This document shows, one piece after another, positions 4,160-64,000 of a stretch of 64,000 nt of DNA. Numbering within the stretch: the stretch's first letter is position 1; the number at the start of each line of letters is the position of its first letter. The position numbers were made by a program, and so were the translations under genes. The notes beneath the pieces are model-generated. The model saw only the letters and a program-made list of their open reading frames with translations, had not been told where the DNA came from and did no database searches. This DNA is from Macrostomum lignano (lineage: Eukaryota): the NCBI GenBank assembly GCA_002269645.1, contig NIVC01002494.1, positions 62,001-126,000 of the forward strand. Reading direction: 5' to 3'.

Positions 4160-7130
4160 GCGGCAAGACCAAGAGAGGGCAGCGAAGCGAGCGCCGGTGA
4201 GTTGAACGTCGGCGTAAGCGAAACCGGCGAGGTCGGCAACGTGGTTCCGCCCGTCGAGCTGCTGCCTTACTTAACCAATCGGATCTTCCGGGTGGCGCCG
4301 GGGACCGTGAGGCTCACTGTCATCGAGCCCGCACAAGGCACGCTTCGGGTCGGGACGCTGAACTGCCGCACTCTCAAGGCCGCCTGGTGGAGAGGGCTGC
4401 TGCCGCAGCTAGCGCTCGACCTCAGATGCGATGTCATCTCGCTGCAAGAGGTGTCCATCAGGGCCGACCCGGGAATTCACTGTGTGGACCTAGGCGCCGG
4501 CTGGACCCTCTAGTACACGTCGGCGGACCAACGAGGCCGTGGAGGAGTTGGAGCGCTGATCGGACCGAGGCTGCAGCAGAGCTGTCGCTGCTTCGGGTCG
4601 ACGCCCGGCTTCGCGGCCGGAACGCTCGCCTGTTCTGCGCGTATGCGCCTCCTGCCACCCGACCTGACGAGGCTCAAGTCTTCTTCGAGCAGCTCTCGGC
4701 CCAGGTGGAGGAGACGGCGCAGTGTGACACAGTGGTCGTCCTCGGAGACCTGAACGCGATTTTGCGTAGGTCCGAGCGGTCGCTGTTTGTGACACCGCGC
4801 GAGAACGGAAACACCGGAGCGCTAGAAGACTTCCTGGAGAGGCAGGACATGGTGTCGGCCAACACCCGGTTCCGCAAGCCACCCGGCAGGCTCGCGACCT
4901 TCGTGGGCTGCAAGCTCGCGGAGGCAGGCACAGCTCGACCTTGTGCTTGTGCGTCTTCGTGAGCACCGCCGCGCCGTCAACTGCCGCATCATCACGCCGC
5001 TGGCTCTGCGGTCCGACCACCGGCTCCTCGTCTGCGACCTGCGTGCACGCGATCCGCTTTACGTCCGCCGAAGCGGCCACTGCGGCGCTACTACCGTGCG
5101 CTCAAGGACAGCCAGACGCGTCGCAATTTTGCTAGTGCCTTCGTCAGCGCGCTTGGCGACAGGTGCGGGTGCGCCGAGTACACGGAGGTAAGTGCCGCGC
5201 TTAGAGCCGCGGCGGAGCAAGCAGTCCCACTGATGCAACCGGCCCAACATGGACAGCCGGTCTGGCAGGACGACCCTGCGATCCGGCAAGCGAGGGCAGA
5301 GCTGGAGAGGCTCCGTCTGAGCAGGCGGCCAACTCGCGAGGCGGAGGAGGCTCTGGCGGCTGTCTACCTGCAGCGGCAACAGGGCGCTGTGGATGACGCC
5401 ATCCAGGCTGTCACCTCCGCTGGACCCGACGCTAAAGGGCGCGTGGCCTAGTCCGCCATCAATGCTCTGACCGGGCGGAAGCTGCGCATCCCGCTCAACC
5501 TTGCCGGCGACACTCCGGATGAGCGCAAAAATGAGCTGCGCAAGTTCTTCGCCGCCATCGTCAGCGCGCCGTCGCCCCCGCTGCCAAACGATCTGAGGCT
5601 GCCACCGGAGACGCCGTTGCCGGCAGAGGAGAGTTTTAATGTAGCGCCAGTCAGCACAGCCGACGTTGTGAGGCCCGCCCAACAGTCACCGAGCGGGAAA
5701 GCGCTGGGTCCGGACGAGGTGCCCATCGATGCGCTGCGACTCCACTGTGTGGCCAGCGAGGTCGCCAGTGTGATGAACCGCGTGCTTTTCGTTGAGGCGG
5801 CACCCAATGAATGGACCACGGCGCACATCGTCGCTATTCCGAAGAAACCGTGCACCACACGGCTTGAGGAGCACCGAGGTATCTGCTTTCAGTCCTGCGC
5901 TGCGAAGCTGTTCAACCGGATGCTGTTATCGCGGTTGCAGCCCGTGCTGGACCCGTACCTGCGTCCTGAACAGAACGGCTTCCGGCCCCACCGCGGCACA
6001 GTGGCGCAGATCCTGGCTCTTCGCCGAGTCATCGAGGAAGCGCGGACCCGCCAGTCGAGCTGCTCTCTTTATTGACTTCAGGAAGGCTTTCGACTCAGTC
6101 GTGAGGGCCGTGCTCCAATGGTGCTTCGTGCGTACAACGTGCCAGAGCAACTGATTTCCGCCGTCATGGCGCTGTATCACGGCACGAACGCTGCTGTGCT
6201 GACACCGGACGGCCTGTCGGATTTCTTTGAGACATCCTCTGGGGTGCTTCAGGGAGATACGCTTGCGCCGTTCCTGTTTGTCCTGGTGTTTGACTGGGTG
6301 CTGCGCGGACTGCTCTCCCTTCTAACGACGACGGCTTCCTGCTGCAGCGACGCGTGGGTCGACGCCAACCGGAAAGGCGGCTTTGCGTTTTGGGCTAGGC
6401 CGATAATCTCGCTTTGCTGTCCTCAACCGTCGAAGGCGCCCAACGCCAGCTGGACCGGCTGTTGAGCGTTGCGGCGAGTGTCAGCCTGGTGGTCAACACG
6501 CAGAAGACCGTCGTGCTCTGCGTGCCGGACGACATAGTGGCTGCTATTTTCTGCCGAGGCGCCGACTGTCAGGCGACGAAGCTTCCGTGCTGTCAGCAGT
6601 TCGTCTACTTCGGCGGTCTGGTGCCTGACGTTCGCGAGGACCTGCGACTTGCCTGGGCTGTCTTTCGTTCCGTGAGGGCTGTCCTGCAGTCCGAGGCCCT
6701 GCCCGACCGCCAGAGGACGGCGTTGTTCCAGGCGGTGATCGAGACCGTCCTGTTGTACAACGCCGAGACCTGGACACTGACGGATTCGCTCGAACAGCTG
6801 GTCGATGCGGCGCACGCTGGCCTGCTGCGCGCCGCCTTCAAGATCGGCTACGAGCGAGTCACCAATGAGGCACTCTATCGCCGAACCGGCCTGTCCCGTC
6901 CCAGCGAACTGTTGCGCCGTCGGTGACTCCAGCTGGCATGCCACATCATCTGCGCCGAGTCGTACTGCCCACAGCCGGTGCAGGAGGTGCTGCTGCTGAC
7001 GCTACAGGCACCGGGCAGGCGTGTACTCGGCGTTTCGTCGACTGCCTTTGCTGGCTGATGCCGGCGCCCCGGACACTGCCGGCGGCGCGGCCTACGTTCG
7101 CGCCCAGGCCTTGAAACGCGCCTTGTGACG
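4160..7130 (+). mobile_element. Decayed non-LTR retrotransposon (APE endonuclease + RT, RTE-like); stops and frameshifts
   Basis: Endonuclease motifs VGTLNCRTL, DVISLQE, VLGDLNA, SDHRLL; RT motifs GKALGPDEVP, WTTAHIVAIPKK, EQNGFRPHRG, FIDFRKAFDSV, GVLQGDTLAPFLF; RTE-type LLYNAETWTLT. In-frame TAG at 4511 and 5449, several frameshifts, YADD box degraded. Element ends approximate. Confidence 0.85.
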
Positions 7131-42161: not shown

Positions 42162-45100
42162 ATGAGTTTTGGAAGGCGCAACAACTTCATGGATCCAAAC
42201 TTCGATGGTCGTCGAGGTCGTCAGATGACTTCGCCAAAAGCGTCAGCTCTGCCTGGCGGCCCAGCGGGCCCTGCCGAAGGATTCAACGATAATGTGCCGA
42301 ACGGATTGTTGAAGACAGCTAAGCAGACTGGAGTGCTGAATCTTTCTAATAAAGATTTGTCTCATGTGCCCGATAAAGTGTGGCAGGTGAGTTGCTGGTC
42401 TTTTGGCCTCTAGCTGGCTAGTTTCTTGCCAAGAGGGGGAGATTCTCCCCAAGTCCGCCACTATAGCAATGAGATTCTCCCCAAGTCTACCACTATAGCA
42501 ATGAGATTCTCCCCAAATCCACCACTATAGCAATGAGATTCTCCCCAAGTCCACCACTATAGCAATGAGATTCTCCCCAAGTCCGCCACTAAAGCAATGA
42601 GATTCTCCCCAAGTCCATCACTATAGCAATGAGATTCTCCCAAGTCCACCACTATAGCAATGAGATTCTCCCCAAGTCCACCACTATAGCAATGAGATTC
42701 TCCCCAAGTCCACCACTATAGCAATGAGATTCTCCCCAAGTCCGCCACTAAAGCAATGAGATTCTCCCCAAGTCCGCCACTAAAGCAATGAGATTCTCCC
42801 CAAGTCCGCCACTAAAGCAATGAGATTCTCCCCAAGTCCGCCACTAAAGCAATGAGATTCTCCCCAAGTCCATCACTATAGCAATGAGATTCTCCCCAAG
42901 TCCACCACTATAGCAATGAGATTCTCCCCAAACCCGCCACTAAAGCAATGAGATTCTCCCCAAGTCCGCCACTAAAGCAATGAGATTCTCCCCAAGTCCA
43001 CCACTATATCAATGAGATTCTCCCCAAGTCCGCCACTAAAGCAATGAGATTCTCCCCAAACCCGCCACTAAAGCAATGAGACTCTCCCCAAGTCCGCCAC
43101 TAAAGCAATGAGATTCTCCCCAAGTCCGCCACTAAAGCAATGAGATTCTCCCCATATCCATCACTGTAGCAATGAGATTCTCCCCAAATCCATCACTATA
43201 GCAATGAGATTCTCCCTAAGTCCGCCACTAAAGCAATGAGATTCTCCCCGATCCGCCTCTACATTGGTTGAACTTCAAGTCACAGCGCAGTCCCAGAAGC
43301 CCCACCTGCAACCCACTTGGCAGCTGGCCAACAGCGCGGACGCCTCCCCAGCCGACATCGCACTGGACAGATCCGGGGACAACGGGCCGCGCTGGTGGGA
43401 GGTCGCAGAGCTGACGAAGCTCTACCTGTCAGCCAACAGGCTGGAGTCTCTGTCCGAGTCCATCGTCAAGTTTCCCCATCTGGCAGTTGTCGATGTCCGG
43501 GACAACCGGCTGATCCGCCTGCCTGACGCCGTCGGGCAGCTCGCCGAGCTGCGCAGCCTCAACGCCTCGAAGAATCGGCTGATCGAGTTGCCGCCCAGCC
43601 TGGCCGCCAGCGGCTCCCTTGTCCAACTGAGCGTCTCGGCCAACTGCCTGTCTGAATTGCCGCCGGACATTGGCCGGCTGGACAGTCTGTCCGAGTTGGA
43701 CATTGCGGACAATCAGCTGACCGGCCTGCCGGACAGTATCGCCATGCTGCGCTGCCTCCGCTGTCTGGAGGCCGGCGGCAACCGGATTGACAGCCTGCCA
43801 GCTGGGGTGGCCTATCTGCCGGCCTTGAGTCGCCTTGGCCTGGCCGGCAACCGGCTCGAGCACCTGCCAGGCGGCCTCTATCCGGCTCTGGAGGTGCTGG
43901 ACCTGTCCGACAATCAGCTGACCGACCTGCCGCCAATTGGAGCCGATCCAGATTCGCCAGCCAAGCTCAAGGAGTTGCACCTGGTTAATAACAGGATTAG
44001 CCGGCTGTTGCCAGACAGGCTCCGTCCGCTGGGCGTCAGCCTTCGCCATCTGGATCTGAAGCGCAACTGCCTGTCTGAACTGCCCGTCGAGTTGGCTGGG
44101 TTGCTGCCTCTGCTTGAGCGATTGGACCTCACTAATAACGATTTGAGCAGCCTGCCAAACGAGCTCGGCCTGCTCACTGGGCTGAAGTGCATCCTGCTGG
44201 ACGGCAATCCGCTTCGAGCCCTGCGTCGCGAAGTTGTTGCCAGGGGCACTGAGGCCATCAAAAAGCATCTGGCTTCGCGCATCGCCCAGCCCGCGGCTGC
44301 CGAGGCCGCCGTTGACGCCGCAGCCGCCGTTGCCGCCGCCGCCGCTGCCGCCGTCGCTTCTGGCGGCTCCGCTACGGAAGTCGCCGCAGCTGCGTCCGCC
44401 TGTAGTAAAAAAATCAGCAAAAAGGACCCGGCCCCCAAAACTGCTCTGCAGGTGAGGTGAACTGAAGCAAATCCTCATTGGGAGTCAGTCTGTCTCAGAA
44501 ACCCCCATTGAGAGTCAGTCTGTCTCAGAAACCCCCATTGAGAGTCAGTCTGTCTCAGAAATCCCCATTGAGAGTCAGTCTGTCTCAGAAATTCCCATTG
44601 AGAGTCAGTCTGTCTCAGAAACCCCCATTGAGAGTCAGTATGTCTCAGAAATCCCCATTGAGAGTCAGTCTGTCTCAGAAACCCCCATTGAGAGTCAGTA
44701 TGTCTCAGAAATCCCCATTGAGAGTCAGTCTGTCTCAGAAATCCCCATTGAGAGTCAGTCTGTCTCAGAAATCCCCATTGAGAGTCAGTCTGTCTCAGAA
44801 ATCCCCATTGAGAGTCAGTCTGTCTCAGAAATCCCATTGAGAGTCAGTCTGTCTCAGAAATCCCCATTGAGAGTCAGTCTGTCTCAGAAATCCCCATGAA
44901 GAATCGAACCCGTCCCGAACCCGCAGGCCCTGCAACAGCAGTTCGGCCTGGATCTGGGCGAGCTGCGCGTCACCGGCAGTTTAAAATATGCCGACAAGCG
45001 AGTAGCGGAAGTGCCGGAACCGCTGCTCGAACTGTTGGCCAACAACTCGGAGACTGGCGTCAGCGTGACCCGGATTGACCTCTCCGGCAACGAGTTGGCT

Positions 45101-46259: not shown

Positions 46260-46890
46260 TTTGGCTCGCACACTGAAGCCAGGACAAAACAGATAATGAT
46301 GGCGTTCACGCTAATAATTCGGAGTTTTAGGATCCGAGAATAAAACAATTTGACAGCTATTGGATTTGCGATTTAGTCCAGTGACTGGGTTGGCTTAGAA
46401 ATTAAGATTAATTATGAGCAGATTGAATACATTGAATGAATGGTGGGTCAGGCTTGAGAATACCAATTTGGTTTGATTGCAGTGCAGATAATCGTAAATC
46501 ACAGGGTATTCAGAGGCTAAACAGGTTCGGGATACAGCATAGCTACGAGCGTACTTCTTATCTGACTCTGAAAATCCAAGTAGAGAAACATCTCGCTGCT
46601 GACTGAACTGCGAGCTCACTGGATCAGCCACTGCTGTGCAGATACCGCGAGGACAGCCGGAGCGCAAACCAGACAGTTCCAGCACTGAGCCACGCCAGAT
46701 CCACATTTAGTTGAGCTGACGATTTCGCCTGCGTCGAGTTTCGAGGCGACGACTTGGCCGTGGAATTTTTTTGGTTGTTCACCAAATGCTGCGCCACAGT
46801 CGTTTGGGGTGAGTTGTGCGGAGTCTTATAGTCGGTTAGTTCGCACCATCGCTTTTTGTCTTTAGTGACTAGCTTACGAGACATACTCGA
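46260..46890 (-). pseudogene. 3' fragment (end of last exon + 3' UTR) of the CLCA-like gene; frameshifted; truncated at a (CT)n tract
   Basis: Direct-repeat similarity to 48793-49400; NSTAKSSPRNSTQAKSSAQLNVDLAWLSAGTV shared; a 5-nt insertion shifts the C-terminal frame. Confidence 0.8.
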
Positions 46891-47879: not shown

Positions 47880-48500
47880 ATTTTTTGGGATTTCTGGGAC
47901 AGACTGACTCTAAATGGGGATTTCTGAGACAGATCCTGACTCCCAATGGGATTTCTGAGACAGACTGACTCTTAATGGGATTTCTGAGACAGACTGACTC
48001 CCAATGGAATTTCTGAGACAGACTGACTCCCAATGGGATTTCTGAGACAGACTGACTCCCAATGGGATTTCTGAGACAGACTGACTCCCAATGGGGATTT
48101 CTGAGACCCACCAGCGCGGCCCGTTGTCCCCGGATCTGTCCAGTGCGATGTCGGCTGGGGAGGCGTCCGCGCTGCTGGCCAGCTGCCAAGTGGGTTGCAG
48201 GTGGGGCTTCTGGGAGCTTGAAGTTCAAGCAATGTAGAGGCTGATTGGAGAGAATCTCATTGCTATAGTGATGGATTTTGTGGAGAATCTCATTGCTATA
48301 GTGGTGGATTTGGGGAGAATCTCATTGCTATAGTGGTGGATTTGGGGAGAATCTCATTGCTATAGTGGTGGATTTGGGGAGAATCTCATTGCTATAGTGG
48401 TGGATTTAGGGAGAATCTCATTGCCATAGTGGTTGGTGGATTTGGGGAGAATCTCATTGCCATAGTGGTTGGTGGATTTCGGGAGAATCTCATTGCTATA
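47880..48500 (-). pseudogene. Inverted partial duplicate of LRRC40 (intron-1 array end, start of exon 2, intron-2 array) with most of exon 2 deleted
   Basis: 48107-48240 is the reverse complement of about 43256-43398; it is flanked by the inverted 32-bp array (48245-48500) and the inverted 30-bp array (47885-48106); junction reads CTGGTGGG|TCTCAGAAATCCCC. Confidence 0.9.
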
Positions 48501-49160
48501 TTTGCTATTCATAATGTAAAGATCATTAAATCAAGGCTTGCAATAGCATAATTAAGGAAGTCAATACTGTGTAACTCACCGATTTTCCTCTGAAAGTACT
48601 TTACTTTCAGGTCACAGAAGGCATTATTTTAACTAAAGGCCAATTGTTGTAGTGCGCTTGGAACAAATTGATCAGCTGATTTCCAGTATTTCTGCACAGT
48701 GTATTTGTAATTTTATCAATCTGAGCGCTTGCCCATCATGCACAAATTCATACCGAAATATTTAGTCATTTAGTCATGCCAATACCTGCCAGTTTGGCTC
48801 GTACACTGAAGCCAGTGCAAAACAGATAATGATGGCGTCCGCGCTAATAATTTATGAGTTTTAGGATCGGAGAATAAAACAATTTGACAGCAATTTGATT
48901 TGCGATATCAAAGCAATTAAGTACACTGACTGGGCTGGCTTAGAAATTAAGATTAATTATCAGCGGATTGAATGCATTGAATGAATGGTGGGTCAGGCTT
49001 GAGAATACCAATTTGGTTTGATTGCAGTGCAGATAATCGTAAATCACAGGGTATTCAGAGGCTAAACAGGTTCGGGATACAGCATAGCTACGAGCGTACT
49101 TCTTATCTGACTCTGAAAATCCAAGTAGAGAAACATATCGCTGCTGACTGAACTGCGAGC

Positions 49161-51228
49161 TCACTGGATCAGCCACTGCTGTGCAGATACCGTGAAGACA
49201 GCCAGAGAGCAGACGGTTCCAGCACTGAGCCACGCCAGATCCACATTTAGTTGAGCCGACGATTTCACCTGCGTCGAGTTTCGTGGCGACGACTTTGCCG
49301 TGGAGTTGGCTGTTGACTTGGCCTTGTTCGGGTCATTCGTTAAACTTTGCGCCACAGTCGAGTCGAGTTCGCACCATTGCGTTCTGTCTACAGCAAATGG
49401 CTCTTTAAGCGATGTCATCGTCTTGGCATAAATAAAGTGAAGACTAGACTCACTGGACACGTTCGCAGCGGAAATGGCAATCACTGCTATCCACATTTGA
49501 GGCTCATTCAGAGCCATATACTGGCTGTAGATGTTCACCGAAGATTGGTTGGTGACGGCCAGTTCTGGACAGGAGCTATAGTTACGGCCCTTTGAAGTGG
49601 TGCAGCTGTCCCCTGATTTTTCGTAGCGAATGCTGTAGACAGGCACTTCTGTTGGCGGTAATTTAGATGCTCATAAGCGTCAAAATAAGTGAAATTTGCA
49701 TGGCGGCTGCGCAATGGATATTTGGGATACTGTTTACTCTTTGAACAGAATGCCAAAGAGTGTGCTTTTGTAACTTAATGGCGTGAAAAATATACATATC
49801 GGTACAATTCATATTTCAGCTTGTATTTCAACAATCAGCAGAGCTGCTGCAAGCGTTGCACCTACCTGCTTTAGGCGGGAGTAGACCAGACGGATCTTCA
49901 ACGGGATACCATTTGATCTCAAATATTTTGCTCGCGTTATTCAAGTTACTTTTATAGATCCACGTAACTTTTTCAGGCACAATACGACGTCTGTCAAAGT
50001 TGGGGTCCTCCGCCTGAACTGTCAAAGTGCCGGCAGACAATTCCACTTGGAGCGGGTACGTGACTTTCACAGTGACATCGTATTGACCAGCTTTCTGTAC
50101 TGCATTAAGTGGTATCTGGGCGGTGAATACTCCGTCACCTGTACGAAGAAAATGCGAGTAAAATGAGTCTTAAATCGTTGTCTGAGAGTAACAGATTTAA
50201 TCCAGCTACTGAAAGTTTAGTCTTTACTCACTGCGACGTTGTTCGAATATACAAAATCGAGCCACTTCCGTGTTGCCTGCTTCGACCACTGCGTACATGC
50301 GATACTTGTGTTGAATTTGGGATGTTGGTAACAGATACACGTCGACACTGATTGAAGTATCATACTTGACCATTTTTACTTTTTTTGGTGACACTTCAAA
50401 GATAGAATCTTTAGGAAGCCAATGAGGTCGTGCCGTGATAACTACACGCATGTTTGTCGCCGCCTGTCTGCGAATCCGGCGTGCGAGACCGACTGCGAGA
50501 TTCGCCAGCGTCCACTTTCCACTCTGTTGGAGTGGCGGGTTTGAGGCAAGGCGATTTCTATTGGTTTAAGCCTAAAAGTTTAATAGTCTTAGTCTTACTA
50601 ATTAACTGCCCTAATAATTATTTCTATTTATGGCTTATCTGCCCCTGAAAAAGCATATTTAAATTGTAGTGAATGGGAAAGTCAGTTTTAGTTTAGTGTA
50701 ACACACTGTTACAGTAACTGTTAATATTTCACTTTCTTTTGTGTTCTACTTTTGCCGTCGTAAAGTAATCCCTCCAGCAAGCGAGAACATTGGCTCATAA
50801 TGCACGTAATTGGCTCAACTCACCTCAACCTCTGCATCAGGAATTTGCATTGTCACGGATCCGACTGCAACATCGACTGTGCAAACGGCGCTGCTGCCAC
50901 CAGAGCAATCGAAAGTCCTACCGCTCGGCGACCGAAGCATGAGGCGCAGAGAGTCAACCTTGGCGGGATCGCTTGGCAGAAACAGCGAGAAGACGAGATT
51001 GCTGCGAGCGCTGACGTCTAATTCCACCGGATACCGTAGGTCAAAGGGAACTTGCCTCGAATCCAGCTGCTTGTCATGCACGTCGCCGTCTGCGGATATT
51101 TGCACAAAGACTGGGAAGTCGTTATAGTAGCCGTCATCAGCGAGATGCAGTTTGCTTGACGCATCGAGCTGGATGCAAAAAGCAGCCAGAAAAGTCATGA
51201 AGATTGTGCTGGCGTTTTTTAGCCTCAT
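49161..51228 (-). CDS. Secreted/membrane-anchored CLCA-like protein, copy A (about 485 aa), apparently lacking the metalloprotease and VWA domains. Exons 51228-50824, 50523-50232, 50138-49866, 49648-49161
   Basis: Signal peptide MRLKNASTIFMTFLAAFCIQLDAS; KLHLADDGYYND (cf. CLCA IQLNNNGYEG); LRSPSG...MQIPDAEVE|SGKW (cf. LWDPSG...LQIPGIAKVGTW); DGVFTA and GQYDVTV (cf. DDGVYSRY, GRYSVKV); FnIII-like IKWYPVED/YSIRY/MWIAVIAISAANVSSESS; hydrophobic C-terminus. The first three exons and their splice sites are conserved with copy B. Gene model is firmer than the family call. Confidence 0.65.
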
Positions 51229-52029
51229 GTTTAAGAATTCTGTGCAGATAAAAGTTGACAGAATTTCTATGCTGAGCGATGGCTCTGCAAGAGATGAACT
51301 GGCGCTGGCAAGCAACTCAGCTCGATACTGCCGGCTTTAAGCTTCGTGCATTAATTTGAATATTTGATTGTTGTATAAAAGTACTTTTAGACCAAACTCA
51401 AAAACATGGCGGCTCGAGCGGTAGCAAGCGGCAAATAGTCTATGGGCCTGAGGGCGGTCAGGCTTAGAAAACAAGTTCAGGTTGAACTTTTGGAAGCAAA
51501 TATCAAAGCAGAAAGCAAATTTCATAGAATGCCATAGAATGTGACTTTGTTTCTTTTGAATTTTAAGTTAGCGCGTGCGCGTCAACCTGGGACGATTTTG
51601 ACCACAGACAGTCTGAATTGATTTTCTTCTGTTCAAATAGAAAGGGATTTTCCGCAATTTTCTGAATGAATTTCCGCAAGCGCTGATTTTTATTAAAGTG
51701 TCTGAATTGAAGTTCTGCTTGTTTCTTTTGAACATGAATTTGCTCAAAATAGGAGGTAAAATGGTGTTTTAACCGCTGTCATTCTTTAACCCTTTTGGTT
51801 GTTCTATGAATCAGTAATTCCAAATAATTAATTAATAAAAAAATTAATTTTTTACAAGCCTCTGTTTTCCCCATTTAAGTGAAACACGTAGCTAATTTTT
51901 TAACTAGAACAATTAGTACAATTTAATTGTTCAGAATCTTATGATGCAGAAACCCATAGTGCAAAATCCCATGTTGCATGTCGAATCCCATACTGCTGCA
52001 GGACCTCATGGAGCATGCAGAATCCCATA

Positions 52030-52297
52030 CTGCTGCAGGACCTGTTGTCTAGTAGCTCATTCAGGCACTCCACCAGCTCCTCCACTCTAGCAAAACGTCC
52101 AAGGCCTTATGCTCTCTTCCATCTGAGACAGTGATGCAGTAAGGCTCGTCAACATTGAACCACGCAGCAGGCAGATGTATTTCAGTCGGACCTGCCTCAT
52201 AGTCCTCATTTCAATCCAAGTAAATAGGTGAAGGAAGAAGAAAATGAAATTCACTAGGAGTACCTTCAGCATGTTGACTGATGACAATATTCTTCAT
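52030..52297 (-). pseudogene. Polinton/Maverick (adintovirus-like) penton/minor capsid 5' remnant, copy 1
   Basis: MKNIVISQHAEGTPSEFHFLLPSPIYLD*NEDYEAGPTEIHLPAAWFNV, then after a frameshift VEELVECLNELL; matches the remembered F-x-x-LPxPIxL...WEVGLxEIxYPxxWYN penton motif. Confidence 0.65.
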
Positions 52298-52339
52298 ATT
52301 ACGATTGAATACGTCAGTTTGAGGCAGGTATCTGAGTCT

Positions 52340-53880
52340 AACTGGTTTTAACCCCCCCGCGCCGGCCTGGCCTCGCTTTTGTTACTGCACTTACTATGGA
52401 CTGCACGCTAAGCAGCATGACCGTACAGACCCTCAAAGATGCCTTACGCGAGAAGGCCTTACCTACAAATAAAGAAGAGCTGATAGGCCGCCTGCTCGCT
52501 GCACGAGCTCCCAGCGACCACGACGGTGACGACAACCAGGACGAGATGACGTGCGCCGGGCTGCGCCAGCGGAGGAGGCCACAGAAGCGCAGATTCGGCA
52601 GGCTCAGAAGAGGATCGAGCTGCTGAAACTGCAGAAGGCTGAGGCCCAGTTGCGGGATGAAGTGCAGTCGATCCGCAGTGGCACCGCATCGCCCCAGCTG
52701 GCCAGAGGAGAGCCGGACATCTACGCCAGCCTGTTTGGGGACCAGAGCCGACAACCGAGGTTTGATTCGGCCAGAGCCCAGCGGCCCCCATCAGCGGTGC
52801 TCATCCCGGACTTCCTGGACAAGAGGCAGCAGTCGGGAGAATGGCTGACACAGGAACGCGGTCGCCTGACTCTGAAAGGCGCCACGCCGAGCCTGTCCGG
52901 AGTCAATTTCGGCCAGTGGGTGGCTGCCAACGCGCAGATCATGCAGGGCCGGCAGCAGGAACACTCGAAGACTCGGATGAGGAGTTTCTGATCGCGGGAA
53001 TTCGCGATGGCTTTCGCATTACCGACGCGGCTCCGACCAGCGAATCCCGGCTCGAAAATCATGCATCCGCACGCTGCGAGGCGAATCGGCATGCCGTTGA
53101 GCTGCAGATCATAGAGGAGGTCGTGGCTAGCCGCGGTACATCTGCGTAACTGACTTGGGCCGATCATCATCAGCCCACTGGGCGCCATCCCGAAGGCAGA
53201 CGGCGCCATCCGCCTAATTCACGACGCGTCCGCGCCGCAGGGCAATAGCCTCAACGATCTGTACAAGCCCCGCCAGAAGCTGAAGTTTGCCAATGTCGAG
53301 GATCTCACCATGGCAGCTGGCACCAGGCTGGTTCATCAGCAAGAGGTCGATCTTCGCCACGCCTACCGAAGCGTTCAGGTGCACCCAGACTGCTATCAGG
53401 CGACGGGGCTCCGGTGGACGTTCGAGCTGGACGGTCAGCCAACCTGCCTGGTTGACACGCGATTCCCATTCGGTGCAGCGGCATCAGTCAACATTTTCCA
53501 CCGCCTAACGCAAGCTGTCAAGCGCTACATGCACAGGCAATTCTCGCATCTGTCCAAATTCGCCGGCATCGCATACCTCGACGATTTCTGCATAGCTGCT
53601 CAGGACTACGAGGTCTGCCTGCAGCTGCACAATTTTCTGCTGGCCACTCTGCAGCGCCTCGGCTTTGAGATCAACTGGGCCAAGACTCAGAGCCCAGCCA
53701 CTTCGGTCACTTTCCTGGGTATGCAGATCGACACATTGACTTGAGAAGATAGACGGCCTTCGAGAACTTCTCCAGGACTGCGCCAACTCAAAGAGCCTGC
53801 AAAAACCGAACTGGTTCTGCAAAGTTGCCAAACCCGCAAAGGCCCTGCTCCGCGCGCTGCTGGAGATAACCATCGCTATT
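52340..53880 (+). mobile_element. Truncated DIRS/Ngaro-like retroelement (gag-like ORF with SAP-like motif + RT); no RNase H or YR left
   Basis: TVQTLKDALREKALPTNKEELIGRL (SAP-like); SPLGAIPKADGAIRLIHDAS; DLRHAYRSV; RFPFGAAASVNIFHRLT; YLDDF; GFEINWAKT; FLGMQID; frameshifted. Confidence 0.8.
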
Positions 53881-53927
53881 CCTGAGCAGCATCATCGAGA
53901 CCAAATTGATCAGGTTATTGATCAGGA

Positions 53928-54310
53928 CCAAGGCCTCATGCTCTCTTCCATCTGAGACAGTGATGCAGTAAGGCTTGTCAACATTGAACCATGCAGCCAG
54001 ACCTGCCTCATAGTCCACATTTCGATTTAAGTAAATAGGTGAAGACAGGTGAAAATAAAAGACACCAGGAGTGCCTTCAGCATGTTGACTGTTGATGGCA
54101 ATATTCTTCATAGTACGATTGAACAAATAATGACAGTTGAATCAACCAGCTAAACTTTTCTTAAGTCTTTGTCGTCTACCCAGCCAGTCGGGTCGTAGCC
54201 GGCCCACTTGACCAGATAGCGAATTTCCCCTTCCGCTTCTCAGTCTTTAGGGACTTCTCGATCACATACAGCCACTGCGAGTCCGGGACAGCCTGCAGCT
54301 CGTGCATGTC
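53928..54310 (-). pseudogene. Polinton/Maverick remnant: integrase C-terminal chromodomain (54307-54150) followed about 40 bp later by penton 5' remnant copy 2 (54111-53928)
   Basis: HELQAVPDSQWLYVIEKSLKTEKRKG /frameshift/ EIRYLVKWAGYDPTGWVDDKDL; then MKNIAINSQHAEGTPGVFYFHLSSPIYLNRNVDYEAGLAAWFNV, a diverged direct repeat of 52100-52310. Confidence 0.7.
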
Positions 54311-58973: not shown

Positions 58974-60735
58974 GAGCTGATTTAAAGTGAATTATGTAAT
59001 TTGCATGGCGGAGAATGTGAGGGAGAATCAGAGCTGATTAAAGTGAATCATGTAATTTGCATGGCGGAGAATGTGAGGGAGAATCAGAACTGATTTAAAG
59101 TGAATCATGTAATTTGCATGGCGGAGAATGTGAGGGAGAATCAGAGCTGATTTAAAGTGAATCATGTAATTTGCATGGCGGAGAATGTGAGGAAGAATCA
59201 GAGCTGATTTAAAGTGAATCATGTAATTTGCATGGCGGAGAATGTGAGGGAGAATCAGAGCTGATTTAAAGTGAATCATGTAATTTGCATGGCGGAGAAT
59301 GTGAGGGAGAATCAGAGCTGATTTAAAGAGAATCATGTAATTTGCATGGCGGAGAATGTGAGGAAGAATCAGAGCTGATTTAAAGTGAATCATGTAATTT
59401 GCATGGCGGAGAATGTGAGGGAGAATCAGAGCTGATTTAAAGTGAATCATGTAATTTGCATGGCGGAGAATGTGAGGGAGAATCAGAGCTGATTTAAAGA
59501 GAATCATGTAATTTGCATGGCGGAGAATGTGAGGGAGAATCAGAGCTGATTTAAAGTGAATCATGTAATTTGCATGGCGGAGAATGTGAGGGAGAATCAG
59601 AGCTGATTTAAAGAGAATCATGTAATTTGCATGGCGGAGAATGTGAGGAAGAATCAGAGCTGATTTAAAGTGAATCATGTAATTTGCATGGCGGAGAATG
59701 TGAGGGAGAATCAGAGCTGATTTAAAGTGAATCATGTAATTTGCATGGCGGAGAATGTGAGGGAGAATCAGAGCTGATTTAAAGAGAATCATGTAATTTG
59801 CATGGCGGAGAATGTGAGGGAGAATCAGAGCTGATTTAAAGTGAATCATGTAGTTTGCATGGCGGAGAATGCGAGGGAGAATCAGAGCTGATTTAAAGAG
59901 AATCATGTAATTTGCATGGCGGAGAATGCGAGGGAGAATCAGAACTGATTTAAAGTGAATCATGTAATTTGCATGGCGGAGAATGTGAGGGAGAATCAGA
60001 GCTGATTTAAAGTGAGTCATGTAATTTGCATGGTGGAGAATGTGAGGGAGAATCAGAGCTGATTTAAAGTGAGTCATGTAATTTGCATGGCGGAGAATGT
60101 GAGGGAGAATCAGAGCTGATTTAAAGAGAATCATGTAATTTGCATGGCGGAGAATGTGAGGGAGAATCAGAGCTGATTTAAAGAGAATCATGTAATTTGC
60201 ATGGCGGAGAATGTGAGGGAGAATCAGAGCTGATTTAAAGAGAATCATGTAATTTGCATGGCGGAGAATGTGAGGGAGAATCAGAGCTGATTTAAAGTGA
60301 ATCATGTAATTTGCATGGCGGAGAATGTGAGGGAGAATCAGAGCTGATTTAAAGTGAGTCATGTAATTTGCATGGCGGAGAATGTGAGGGAGAATCAGAG
60401 CTGATTTAAAGAGAATCATGTAATTTGCATGGCGGAGAATGTGAGGGAGAATCAGAGCTGATTTAAAGTGAATCATGTAATTTGCATGGCGGAGAATGTG
60501 AGGGAGAATCAGAGCTGATTTAAAGTGAATCATGTAATTTGCATGGCGGAGAATGTGAGGGAGAATCAGAGCTGATTTAAAGAGAATCATGTAATTTGCA
60601 TAGCGGAGAATGTGAGGGAGAATCAGAACTGATTTAAAGAGAATCATGTAATTTGCATGGCGGAGAATGTGAGGGAGAATCAGAGCTGATTTAAAGTGAA
60701 TCATGTAATTTGCATGGCGGAGAATGCGAGGCAGA
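58974..60735. repeat. 57-bp satellite, about 31 copies, each unit carrying ATTTGCAT and two GAGAAT
   Basis: Unit GCTGATTTAAAG(T/A)GAATCATGTAATTTGCATGGCGGAGAATGTGAGGGAGAATCAGA. Confidence 0.96.
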
Positions 60736-60879
60736 ATTAGCAATGGTAAAAAAGCTCACAAATCAGATTGCTGTGTTCGCTGCAGTAAATTCAATGCTGA
60801 TGAAGAATTAGTCAAGTCCGAGTCAGTTTCCAAAACCGAAGCTTCCAATCAGCTTTTGTTACCAAAAAGTCGAGGCTCA

Positions 60880-62508: not shown

Positions 62509-63847
62509 ATGAGGCTAAAAAACGCCAGCACAATCTTCATGACTTTTCTGGCTGCTTTTTGCATCCAGCTCGATGCGTCAAGCAAACTGCATCTCGCTGA
62601 TGACGGCTACTATAACGACTTGCTAGTCTTTGTGCAAATATCCGCAGACGGCAACGTGCAGGAGAAGCAGCTGGATTTGAGGCAGCTGGATCCGGTGGAA
62701 TTCGACGTCAGTGCTCGCAGCAACGTCGTCTTCTCGCTGTTTCTGCCAAGCGATCCCGCCAAGGTTGGCTCTCTGCGCCTCATGCTTCGGTCGCCAAGCG
62801 GTAGGACTTTCAGTTGCTCTGGAGGCAGCAGCGCCGTTTGCACAGTCGATGTTGCAGTCGGATCCGTGACAATGCAAATTCCTGATGCAGAGGTTGAGGT
62901 CAGTTGAGAAAAGTACGTGCATTATGAGCCAATGTTCTCGCTTGCTGGAGACATACTTTATGATAACAAAAGTCGAAAACAGCAAAAAGCTAATTTACTG
63001 AAAGCTACAGTAACAGTGTGTTACACTTGAACTAAAGTTTCATATTCACTGCACCAACTTTTTAATATGCTGTTCAGGAACAAAGAAATAGAAATTTTAG
63101 GCATCTATGGCAGTTAATTACGAACTAAGAACCGCCAAATTTAAGGACTTAAAAATAATGGTAATCGACTCGCCTCAAACCCGCCACTCCAACAGAGCGG
63201 AAAGTGGACGCTTGCGAACCTCGCAGTCGGTCTCGCACGCCGGATTCGCAGACAGGCAGCCTCAAACATGCGTATAGTTATCACCGCAAACCAGTTTGGC
63301 ATGCTTCCTGAAGGTACTATACTTAAGGTGAAACCAAACAAAGTGACAATGGTCAAGTATGATACTTCAATCAGTGTCGACGTGTATTTCTTATTAAAGC
63401 CCAAAATTCAGTATCGCATGTACGCAGTTGTCACAGCAGGCGGCACGGAAGTAGCTCGATTTTGTCTATTCCAACAACATAACAGTGAGTAAAGACTAAA
63501 TATTCAGTAGCGCTGAATTAAAATTGTTAGTCTCAAACAACGACTTGAAACACATATTACTCATTTTTTTCATACAGATGAAGAAGTATTCACCGCCCAG
63601 GTACCTCTCTATGCAGTACAGAAAGCTGGCCAGTATGCTGTCGCTGTGAATGTTCACACGTCCAAAATGGCAGAGTCTGCCGGCACTTTGACAGTTCAGG
63701 CGGAGGACCCCAACTTTGACAGACGTCGTATTGTGCCTGAAACAGTTACGGGGGTCTATGAAAGTAACTTAAATAACGCTAGCAAAAAATTTGAGATCAA
63801 ATGGAATCCAGCTGAAGATCCGTCTGGTCTACTCCCGCCTAAAGCAG
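62509..63847 (+). CDS. CLCA-like protein, copy B (partial; runs off the window). Exons 62509-62898, 63196-63484, 63578-63847
   Basis: Inverted paralogue of 49161-51228 with the same signal peptide, splice sites and intron phases; upstream similarity extends to about 62145 vs 51525. Confidence 0.65.
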
Positions 63848-64000
63848 GTAGGTGTAACGCTTGCAGCAGCTCTGCTGATTGTTGAAATACAAGCTGAAAT
63901 ATGAATTGTACCGAATAATATACTTTCACGTCACTTAGTTTCCAAAACACTTTGGCATATAGTTCAAAGAGTAAACAGTGCCCCAAATATCTGTTGCACA

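Follow-up and report, generated by a model that had tools for sequence, protein, structure and literature searches.

How does a gene come to encode the C-terminal half of a CLCA protein with none of the protease and VWA parts that precede it in canonical members of the family, and has such a gene been maintained? The question is raised by a locus of the flatworm Macrostomum lignano, in a stretch of 64,000 nucleotides of contig NIVC01002494.1 that we refer to as the window. An earlier note, made from the sequence alone, had described there a "mini-CLCA" of about 485 amino acids. Comparison of the mini genes with full-length CLCA-like genes of the same genome shows that they arose from such a gene by one DNA-level deletion at a CA microhomology, followed by duplication, and divergence and indel patterns show that purifying selection has preserved their reading frame, with a strength similar to that acting on the corresponding part of the full-length paralogues. 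The reading that we prefer adds to this origin and maintenance a role of the product as a tethered, furin-processed, non-enzymatic headless partner of the full-length paralogues; taken as a whole, we consider it probable rather than certain. The features on which the origin depends are the following.

49161-51228, minus strand: mini-CLCA gene 1 (BOX15_Mlig016394g1), whole coding sequence, 4 exons, 485 aa as spliced translation.
50824-51228, minus strand: exon 1 of gene 1, codons 1-135, holding the signal peptide, the CLCA_N stub, the deletion junction and most of the first beta-sandwich.
51067-51069, minus strand: deletion junction at codon 54 (CAG, Gln54), composed of the "CA" of exon 1 and the terminal G of parental intron 5.
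62509-64000, plus strand: mini-CLCA gene 2 (BOX15_Mlig010296g1), exons 62509-62898, 63196-63484 and 63578-63847; the window ends before the last exon.

The coordinates that the earlier note gave for its mini-CLCA are the exact ends of the gene 1 coding sequence. Its exons (stop included) lie at 51228-50824, 50523-50232, 50138-49866 and 49648-49161 on the minus strand, and its introns of 300, 93 and 217 bp each have GT/AG ends. The spliced product, of the predicted length, is 100% identical to NCBI GenBank PAA57394.1, a "hypothetical protein BOX15_Mlig016394g1" of Macrostomum lignano (P0001). Gene 2 is divergent from gene 1 (head to head) at a distance of 11 kb, and its full product (P0002, 493 aa), encoded on the same contig, is about 80% identical to that of gene 1. 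Up to the window end, gene 2 has the same layout and the same RRIRR site, in agreement with what had been claimed for both paralogues. The M. lignano assembly contains at least four intact mini loci and one partial model, in three diverged types. We compared four mini loci (the two in the window, L003 and L005) and fetched three full-length loci (L001, L002 and L004).

Full-length paralogues elsewhere in the genome display the undeleted state, and the claim that the protease, Cys-rich and VWA parts of a CLCA-like gene have been deleted is thus supported. These paralogues include BOX15_Mlig016365g1 (PAA49495.1; P0019), BOX15_Mlig013914g1 and UniProt A0A1I8G1G6. Their layout comprises a signal peptide, a dead metallohydrolase domain, a VWA domain, a beta-sheet-rich domain (BSR), an inhibitory domain (ID), an FnIII-like domain, a stalk and a hydrophobic tail, encoded in L002 by 9 coding exons for about 980 aa and seen complete in the 1009-aa PAA49495.1. 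The mini protein shares with them a post-VWA half that is about 72% identical and encoded by the same last four exons with the same intron positions, as well as RRIRR, the stalk, a nearly identical C-terminal tail and a homologous 5' flank. Unlike them, it lacks about 495 residues, namely CLCA_N beyond its first strand, the Cys-rich region and a VWA domain with intact DxSxS.

The junction can be read base by base (slashes mark breakpoints and exon boundaries). In L001, L002 and L004, exon 1 reads ...GAGAAGCA/CTATGC..., which in L002 continues to the donor as ...GAG AAG CA/C TAT GCT CAT CTA CTT CAT GTG CTG CAG/gtgagg. The intron 5/exon 6 boundary of L002 and L004 reads ...CCCACAG/CTGGATTCG (in L002, ...ttcccacag/CTG GAT TCG AGG). 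All four mini loci read ...AAGCAG/CTGGATTCG (AAG CAG CTG GAT TCG), and the fused junction sequence is ...GACAAGCAG/CTGGATTCG... According to blastn, the breakpoints lie at 6242 and 9564 of L002, corresponding to a 3321-bp deletion relative to L002 that starts at codon 54 in exon 1, ends at the final 1-3 bases of intron 5 and joins exon 1 in frame to exon 6. The breakpoint is resolved only to the shared CA dinucleotide, a 2-nt microhomology; whichever placement is chosen, intron 5 has contributed one base or more, its last G now being the third base of codon 54. Colinearity between the mini gene and L002 covers the start of exon 1 and exons 6-9. A CLCA-like first strand followed inside one exon by the beta-sheet-rich region, as had been proposed, is accordingly what we observe, with the junction at codon 54 of an uninterrupted exon 1 of 405 nt.

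The mini copies share, in addition, a derived Pro-to-Ser change in the stub (QIPADG to QISADG), and they cluster apart from the full-length genes. Taken together with the identical junction, this indicates that the deletion happened once and that the deleted gene was then duplicated. We rejected an RNA-mediated origin, by exon skipping and subsequent retro-insertion or conversion, because the three introns further downstream are still present, the junction carries one or more intronic bases, and the 5' breakpoint precedes the exon-1 donor by 30 nt (10 codons), at a position without GT; a breakpoint off the splice site, an intronic base and kept introns point to deletion of DNA and not to a spliced RNA intermediate. 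The reverse direction, in which the mini form is ancestral and the full-length form arose by insertion, was rejected as well, since the mini form retains an orphan first CLCA_N strand and the full-length layout is the canonical metazoan one.

Could the mini layout nevertheless be an artefact of assembly or annotation that conceals a full-length gene with exons for protease and VWA? Redundancy and repeats in the Mlig_3_7 assembly, and the fragmentary state of several database models of this family (P0004, P0005-8 and P0017), would favour such a view. However, the junction lies within a continuous exon at four separately assembled loci whose types differ by a synonymous divergence (dS) of about 0.2 and a nonsynonymous divergence (dN) of about 0.12, and the full-length loci were assembled separately from them. 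A tblastn search of the 64-kb window with the protease/VWA paralogues matched residues 1-54 only and returned no protease or VWA coding sequence, and the gene 1 introns are just 93-300 bp. The blank search beyond residue 54 and the shortness of the introns exclude hidden exons at this locus, an eventuality that the earlier note had raised against its own proposal. We find an artefact scarcely credible.

The absence of a zinc motif and of a metal ion-dependent adhesion site (MIDAS) was also substantiated. A motif scan found no HExxH in the mini proteins P0001-3, and the sole DxSxS string of the mini protein, DTSIS at residues 190-194, lies inside a beta-sandwich rather than in a VWA fold. Searched against Pfam with hmmscan, the 485-aa protein gave no CLCA match even at E<=10, no VWA or FnIII match and only sub-threshold Rib/Ig noise, and a Pfam scan of the mini copies likewise gave no CLCA, VWA or FnIII match. 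In the full-length paralogues, by contrast, Pfam CLCA and VWA both reach the gathering threshold, the former with 26-58 bits (cut-off 25.6 bits). The signal peptide and the adjoining stretch "SKLHLADDGYYND...VQISADG..K" make up residues 1-53 of the mini protein. Over this segment its identity to P0005-7 and P0019, paralogues that are positive for Pfam CLCA and whose PF08434 match starts at residues 29-30, amounts to 85-98%. Only about 25 residues of CLCA_N are left in the mini protein, matching the profile from position 3-4, and similarity to the protease-bearing paralogues ends at residue 53. Residue 54 corresponds to residue 574 of P0009 and residue 549 of P0019, and from residue 55 onward the counterpart in the full-length proteins is their post-VWA region. 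The alignment of residues 55-485 with the post-VWA half of the Pfam-CLCA-positive P0019 and P0017 extends from one end to the other at 72% identity; with P0014 and P0012 the identity is 28-37%. In an exhaustive HMMER search, mini residues 54-135 matched residues 574-655 of the 880-aa P0009, and the 979-aa P0012 was 30% identical over mini residues 66-392. The CLCA origin of the mini protein thus rests on paralogy to Pfam-CLCA-positive proteins and not on a profile match of its own, which is the part of the predicted profile similarity that failed. The mini protein is a CLCA by descent and is not a member by the characteristic features of the family, namely the CLCA_N domain (PF08434) by which it is defined (Lenart et al. 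2013), the zinc motif and the VWA domain.

What the deletion removed was already catalytically altered. The CLCA zinc motif is HEXXHXXXGXXDEY, with His156, His160 and Asp167 of CLCA1 as ligands and Glu157 as catalytic base. In the parental paralogues the site reads LYFSQFRWGLFSE(A/D), and all full-length Macrostomum paralogues (P0019, P0009, P0005-7, P0014 and P0012, some of them 30-39% identical; loci L001, L002 and L004) read L(Y/F)FSQ(F/Y)RWGL(F/L)SE at this place, with the three zinc ligands and the catalytic Glu all substituted and the VWA DxSxS kept. By its motifs, the whole M. lignano CLCA-like clade examined is a pseudo-protease clade, and the deletion eliminated a pseudo-protease and a VWA head that is probably functional. 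The parental zinc motif had already been lost, and the protease-dead state therefore predates the mini form. The suggestion of an undescribed protease-dead family therefore stands only in part: an in-frame, selectively retained CLCA form with the C-terminal modules alone was not found in the literature searched, but the protease-dead state was present in the parents, and the form was found only in M. lignano. In P0014 and P0012, the second sandwich carries DNGAGADLKA(N/G)DGTYS, probably a CLCA hallmark. A six-residue deletion there in the subclade of mini and full-length proteins removes this DNGAGAD-type loop, a difference from vertebrate CLCAs.

Two further observations concern the full-length loci and their models. 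In L004 (NIVC01000302.1), the first two exons (2185-2809) lie about 5 kb upstream of the remainder (7962 onward), and the GenBank model of this gene (P0017, 715 aa) begins at an internal Met; probably either the P0017 model is truncated or the L004 gene was split by an insertion. A 461-aa protein (P0004, UniProt A0A1I8G3I1) was considered as a fourth mini form and rejected as a fragment of a full-length gene beginning exactly at exon 6; its UniRef name, "Receptor protein-tyrosine kinase", has no support in its sequence.

Maintenance of the mini genes was examined in the shared C-terminal region. At the between-type divergences given above, dN/dS (omega) is 0.53-0.69; of the five between-type pairs, mini2-mini3 has a Fisher p value of 0.09 and the other four have values of 0.003-0.023. 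The two near-identical type 1 copies give an omega of 0.34, and the two full-length genes give 0.68 over the same region. Constraint was not relaxed by the deletion, and the family as a whole is fast-evolving, its middle domains having an omega of 0.5-1.0 by exon. All nine exon indels are multiples of 3 (3, 6, 3, 3, 39; 15, 3, 6, 3), as against 1 of 17 intron indels, and there is no premature stop or frameshift across the three mini types. Neutral simulation left only 5.5% of copies stop-free once each lineage had diverged by 6%, yet the reading frame is open in all three diverged lineages. With one junction in all four mini loci and a frame conserved at this dS, the layout looks like a maintained architecture and not like decay, as had been suggested. 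The GenBank annotation of the M. lignano assembly was built solely from RNA sequencing-derived transcript models (PMC5730564), and three differently named mini models therefore imply transcription.

It could be argued that the mini copies are transcribed relics, non-functional and either not visibly decayed yet or kept open by gene conversion. Their omega is fairly high (near 1 in some exons), the family is lineage-restricted, the M. lignano genome is highly redundant and neopolyploid, and a decayed 3' fragment adjoins gene 1:

46260-46767, minus strand: partial tandem duplicate of the gene 1 3' end, with the last ~150 nt of coding sequence plus downstream sequence, 91% identical to 48793-49307.

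The coding part of this duplicate is frame-shifted and split across two frames, and from its sequence it is a decayed remnant of a third mini 3' end. Relics, however, would hardly present three types with complete open reading frames at four or more loci, the contrast between exon and intron indels, and an omega that is below 1 and equal to that of the full-length paralogues. Moreover, mini-to-full dS is 0.21-0.31 in the gene body, which argues against frequent gene conversion there. We therefore regard the relic explanation as improbable.

The product of gene 1 is organised in the following order.

51154-51228, minus strand: signal peptide, residues 1 to ~25, with cleavage at about residues 23-25 placed by eye.
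51070-51153, minus strand: stub of the CLCA N-terminal (metallohydrolase) domain, residues ~26-53, including KLHLADDGYYND.
50500-51066, minus strand: first beta-sandwich (BSR homologue), residues 55-143, spanning intron 1 (50524-50823) and aligned to P0019 from residue 549 onward.
50467-50481, minus strand: RRIRR, residues 150-154, from a motif scan; a furin-type R-I-R-R followed by Gln155, in the BSR-ID linker.
50011-50403, minus strand: second beta-sandwich (homologue of the CLCA1 inhibitory domain), residues 176-275, spanning intron 2 and holding the DGVFTAQ...GQYDVTVKV motif.
49428-49959, minus strand: third beta-sandwich (FnIII-like), residues 293-397, spanning intron 3, from AlphaFold 2 strands and Foldseek matches to FnIII arrays.
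49239-49403, minus strand: stalk rich in Ser, Thr and Asn, residues 406-460, with two NST sequons and Cys416.
49164-49238, minus strand: C-terminal hydrophobic tail, residues 461-485, nearly identical between mini and full-length paralogues.

Among the 15-residue windows of the mini protein, hydrophobicity peaks in the core at residues 7-21, and KLHLADDGYYND occupies residues 26-37. An AlphaFold 2 model of the whole chain from a shallow family alignment is all-beta, with three sandwiches at about 54-143, 176-275 and 293-397 and with linker 146-170, stalk and termini disordered; its mean predicted local distance difference test score (pLDDT) is 54.6, and the stalk is below 50. Modelled alone, the first domain is an all-beta sandwich with a pLDDT of 80.4. 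A Foldseek search with the whole chain matched contactin FN1-3, fibronectin and SiiE at E values of 1e-8 to 1e-6, with template modelling scores (TM-scores) of just 0.15-0.25 from this low-confidence model, and the first domain alone had no solved neighbour at E<=0.001 and did not retrieve the ADAMTS13 spacer. The structure check proposed earlier thus gives an all-beta model of low confidence with matches to FnIII/Ig arrays and no significant neighbour of the first domain. phmmer and a profile search of PDB sequences returned nothing for the mini protein or its C-terminal alignment, and with P0014 the only CLCA entry matched was the CLCA1 VWA domain (6PYO/6PYX). By position, the three flatworm sandwiches would correspond to the BSR, ID and FnIII-like domains of CLCA1; the beta-sheet-rich and FnIII regions noticed earlier are both present, in three sandwiches and not in two.

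RIRR at residues 151-154 is preceded by R150, lies between two domains in a loop with a pLDDT <50 and matches the furin consensus R-X-K/R-R. RRIRR is kept in every mini and full-length copy, and the 37%-identical P0014 has RFRR. Ser, Thr and Asn make up 36% of the stalk. Residues 461-477 (LAWLSAGTVCSLAVFTV) form a 17-residue hydrophobic stretch with a Kyte-Doolittle value of 1.8, as strong as the signal peptide, followed by 8 residues without Lys or Arg. This tail is a candidate glycosylphosphatidylinositol (GPI) signal or membrane anchor, and its composition would suit the former better than a transmembrane segment. Among the paralogues, P0012 has a true transmembrane helix with a cytosolic tail, and P0014 has a hydrophobic stretch at its end.

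In the reading that we prefer, the mini product would enter the secretory pathway and be N-glycosylated, and its C-terminal hydrophobic segment would tether it to the cell surface, more likely through a GPI signal than through a transmembrane helix. A proprotein convertase may cut it at RIRR/Q, between the first and second beta-sandwich. As it possesses neither a catalytic nor a MIDAS ligand-binding head, it would act non-enzymatically, presumably as a headless subunit co-expressed and co-assembled with the full-length (also catalytically dead) paralogues, and may thereby dilute or modulate VWA-mediated binding by them. Mini and full-length genes are most alike in the C-terminal tail, the first 159 nt of the coding sequence and the 5' flank:

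51229-51527, minus strand: shared 5' flank of gene 1, ~290 bp, 85-94% identical to the other mini copies and to full-length genes (blastn).

From this similarity, the flank is the probable common promoter and 5' untranslated region of mini and full-length genes. According to a cryo-electron microscopy preprint on CLCA1, the post-VWA part is composed of BSR, ID and FnIII-like domains, the C-terminal tail drives oligomerisation, BSR and ID contact the protease and VWA domains, and the BSR and inhibitory domains are proposed to regulate the protease/VWA head (bioRxiv 10.1101/2025.10.18.683246). The conserved flank and tail, taken together with tail oligomerisation and BSR/ID docking in CLCA1, favour a role as headless partner. 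A more specific proposal, by analogy with CLCA1, is that the stand-alone BSR-ID-FnIII-tail acts in trans, its tail co-oligomerising and its BSR and ID docking on full-length heads, as a dedicated regulatory (dominant-negative or inhibitory) subunit; we put this forward as a speculation that is more doubtful than not by some distance. If it were true, the CLCA C-terminal modules would fold and function without the N-terminal half, at which engineered CLCA1 truncations failed.

Alternatively, a mini protein of the same origin and equally maintained could work alone, as a tethered or shed beta-sandwich glycoprotein of epidermis, gland or mucus that does not interact with the full-length proteins. 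Its role would then be adhesion, lubrication or that of a pathogen decoy. A secretory signal, three Ig/FnIII-like domains, a predicted glycosylated stalk and a tail all suit this idea, the fast-evolving middle domains are typical of surface or secreted proteins under shifting pressures, and CLCA1 is itself a mucus protein (PMC6851300). The sole counterpoint is that the 5' flank and tail are conserved with the full-length paralogues, which suggests shared regulation and assembly; this alternative parts from the preferred reading solely at its final step. We see stand-alone function as a possibility with less in its favour overall, although, as far as the role itself is concerned, independent action at a surface or in mucus is nearly as plausible as headless partnership.

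Several observations weigh against the preferred reading of a selected, headless partner. Constraint is no more than weak at an omega of about 0.6. Identity over the first 159 nt of the coding sequence (51070-51228) is 95-97% in the comparisons made, which set mini1 against the remaining minis and the full-length genes of L001 and L002; the remainder of the genes is about 75-85% identical. Such high identity points to gene conversion or to strong 5' constraint; it may mean conversion and not function, and conversion from full-length paralogues could help to keep the open reading frames intact. The whole-chain structure model is of low confidence, no Pfam model matches the C-terminal half even in full-length paralogues, and no solved CLCA C-terminal structure was present in the PDB searched. 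Homologues were found solely in M. lignano, both in word-indexed searches with the protein, P0007 and the C-terminal alignment and in an exhaustive phmmer search of 1.84 billion representatives. The mini gene IDs were not found in the supplementary text of PMC5816591 and PMC5730564 or in the full texts searched, which yielded no tissue data, and the only paper found on Macrostomum and CLCA merely lists CLCA homologues.

In vertebrate CLCA1/2/4, the module order is BSR, ID, FnIII-like and a C-terminal tail, which in most paralogues spans the membrane or is linked to GPI. The mini protein, a predicted secretory glycoprotein like these, has the same order, and the loop after its second sandwich carries basic residues (PNFDRRR/IVPE) at what would be, by presumed positional equivalence, the site of CLCA self-cleavage. 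Protein searches gave no sequence-level match to a vertebrate or other non-Macrostomum CLCA. Unlike the metzincin-like, self-cleaving vertebrate proteins, the mini protein lacks a metallohydrolase domain, the HEXXHXXXGXXDEY motif and a VWA/MIDAS, and from first principles self-cleavage in cis is impossible without a catalytic domain. CLCAs with substituted catalytic sites are known as an "inactive zincin" class (Lenart et al. 2013, PMC3650047). The mini lineage resembles them in the loss of HExxH, its full-length relatives reading LYFSQFRWGLFSE, but whereas inactive zincins keep the whole CLCA_N fold, the mini protein retains only the first strand. Like human CLCA3, which presumably retains an N-terminal part, it is a naturally truncated product of the CLCA family. 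Truncated CLCAs such as human CLCA3/CLCA3P and the pig CLCA4b mutants owe their shortening to stops or frameshifts and count as pseudogenes that yield no functional protein (PMC5773202, PMC4608703). The mini form differs from both in its in-frame internal deletion, its retained C-terminal modules and its purifying selection.

Several repeats lie near the mini genes. Within the 11-kb spacer that separates genes 1 and 2 lies an RVT_1 reverse-transcriptase fragment at 53310-53744 on the plus strand (Pfam, E 1e-14; surrounding region 52300-54200), together with a direct repeat pair at 52099-52309 and 53928-54123 that is 81% identical. The spacer also contains a 57-bp satellite of 31 copies at 97% identity (58974-60737), and a 571-aa "ORF" at 59028-60743 was dismissed as an artefact of this satellite and not a gene. 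On the 3' side of gene 1, 32-bp and 30-bp satellite arrays occupy 42439-43261, 44469-44897, 47886-48107 and 48245-48500 and recur inverted about 4-5 kb on. The 30-bp satellite is also found directly downstream of the full-length CLCA-like gene in L002 (12430-12675) and seems to travel with the gene family. At the far end of the window, a 670-aa open reading frame at 335-2347 on the minus strand encodes Peptidase_M13_N plus Peptidase_M13, a neprilysin-like metalloprotease, in a region of about 60% G+C versus about 43% around the mini genes. A 62-aa database model (P0013, UniProt A0A1I8G542) joins the end of a mini-2-type exon 1 out of frame to exon 3, skipping the 289-292-nt exon 2, and is either a mis-prediction or a sign of a non-productive splice form.

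In conclusion, the scope of the finding is narrow, covering one flatworm lineage whose parent family was already catalytically dead. Within it, we report a base-resolved case in which a new architecture came from one microhomology deletion, with two exons fused in frame and part of a splice acceptor now serving as part of a codon. For the biology of CLCA proteins it represents a natural experiment, in that evolution kept only the C-terminal modules, those proposed to have regulatory and oligomerisation roles in CLCA1, and it is found in an animal, M. lignano, that is amenable to RNA interference, in situ hybridisation and transgenesis.

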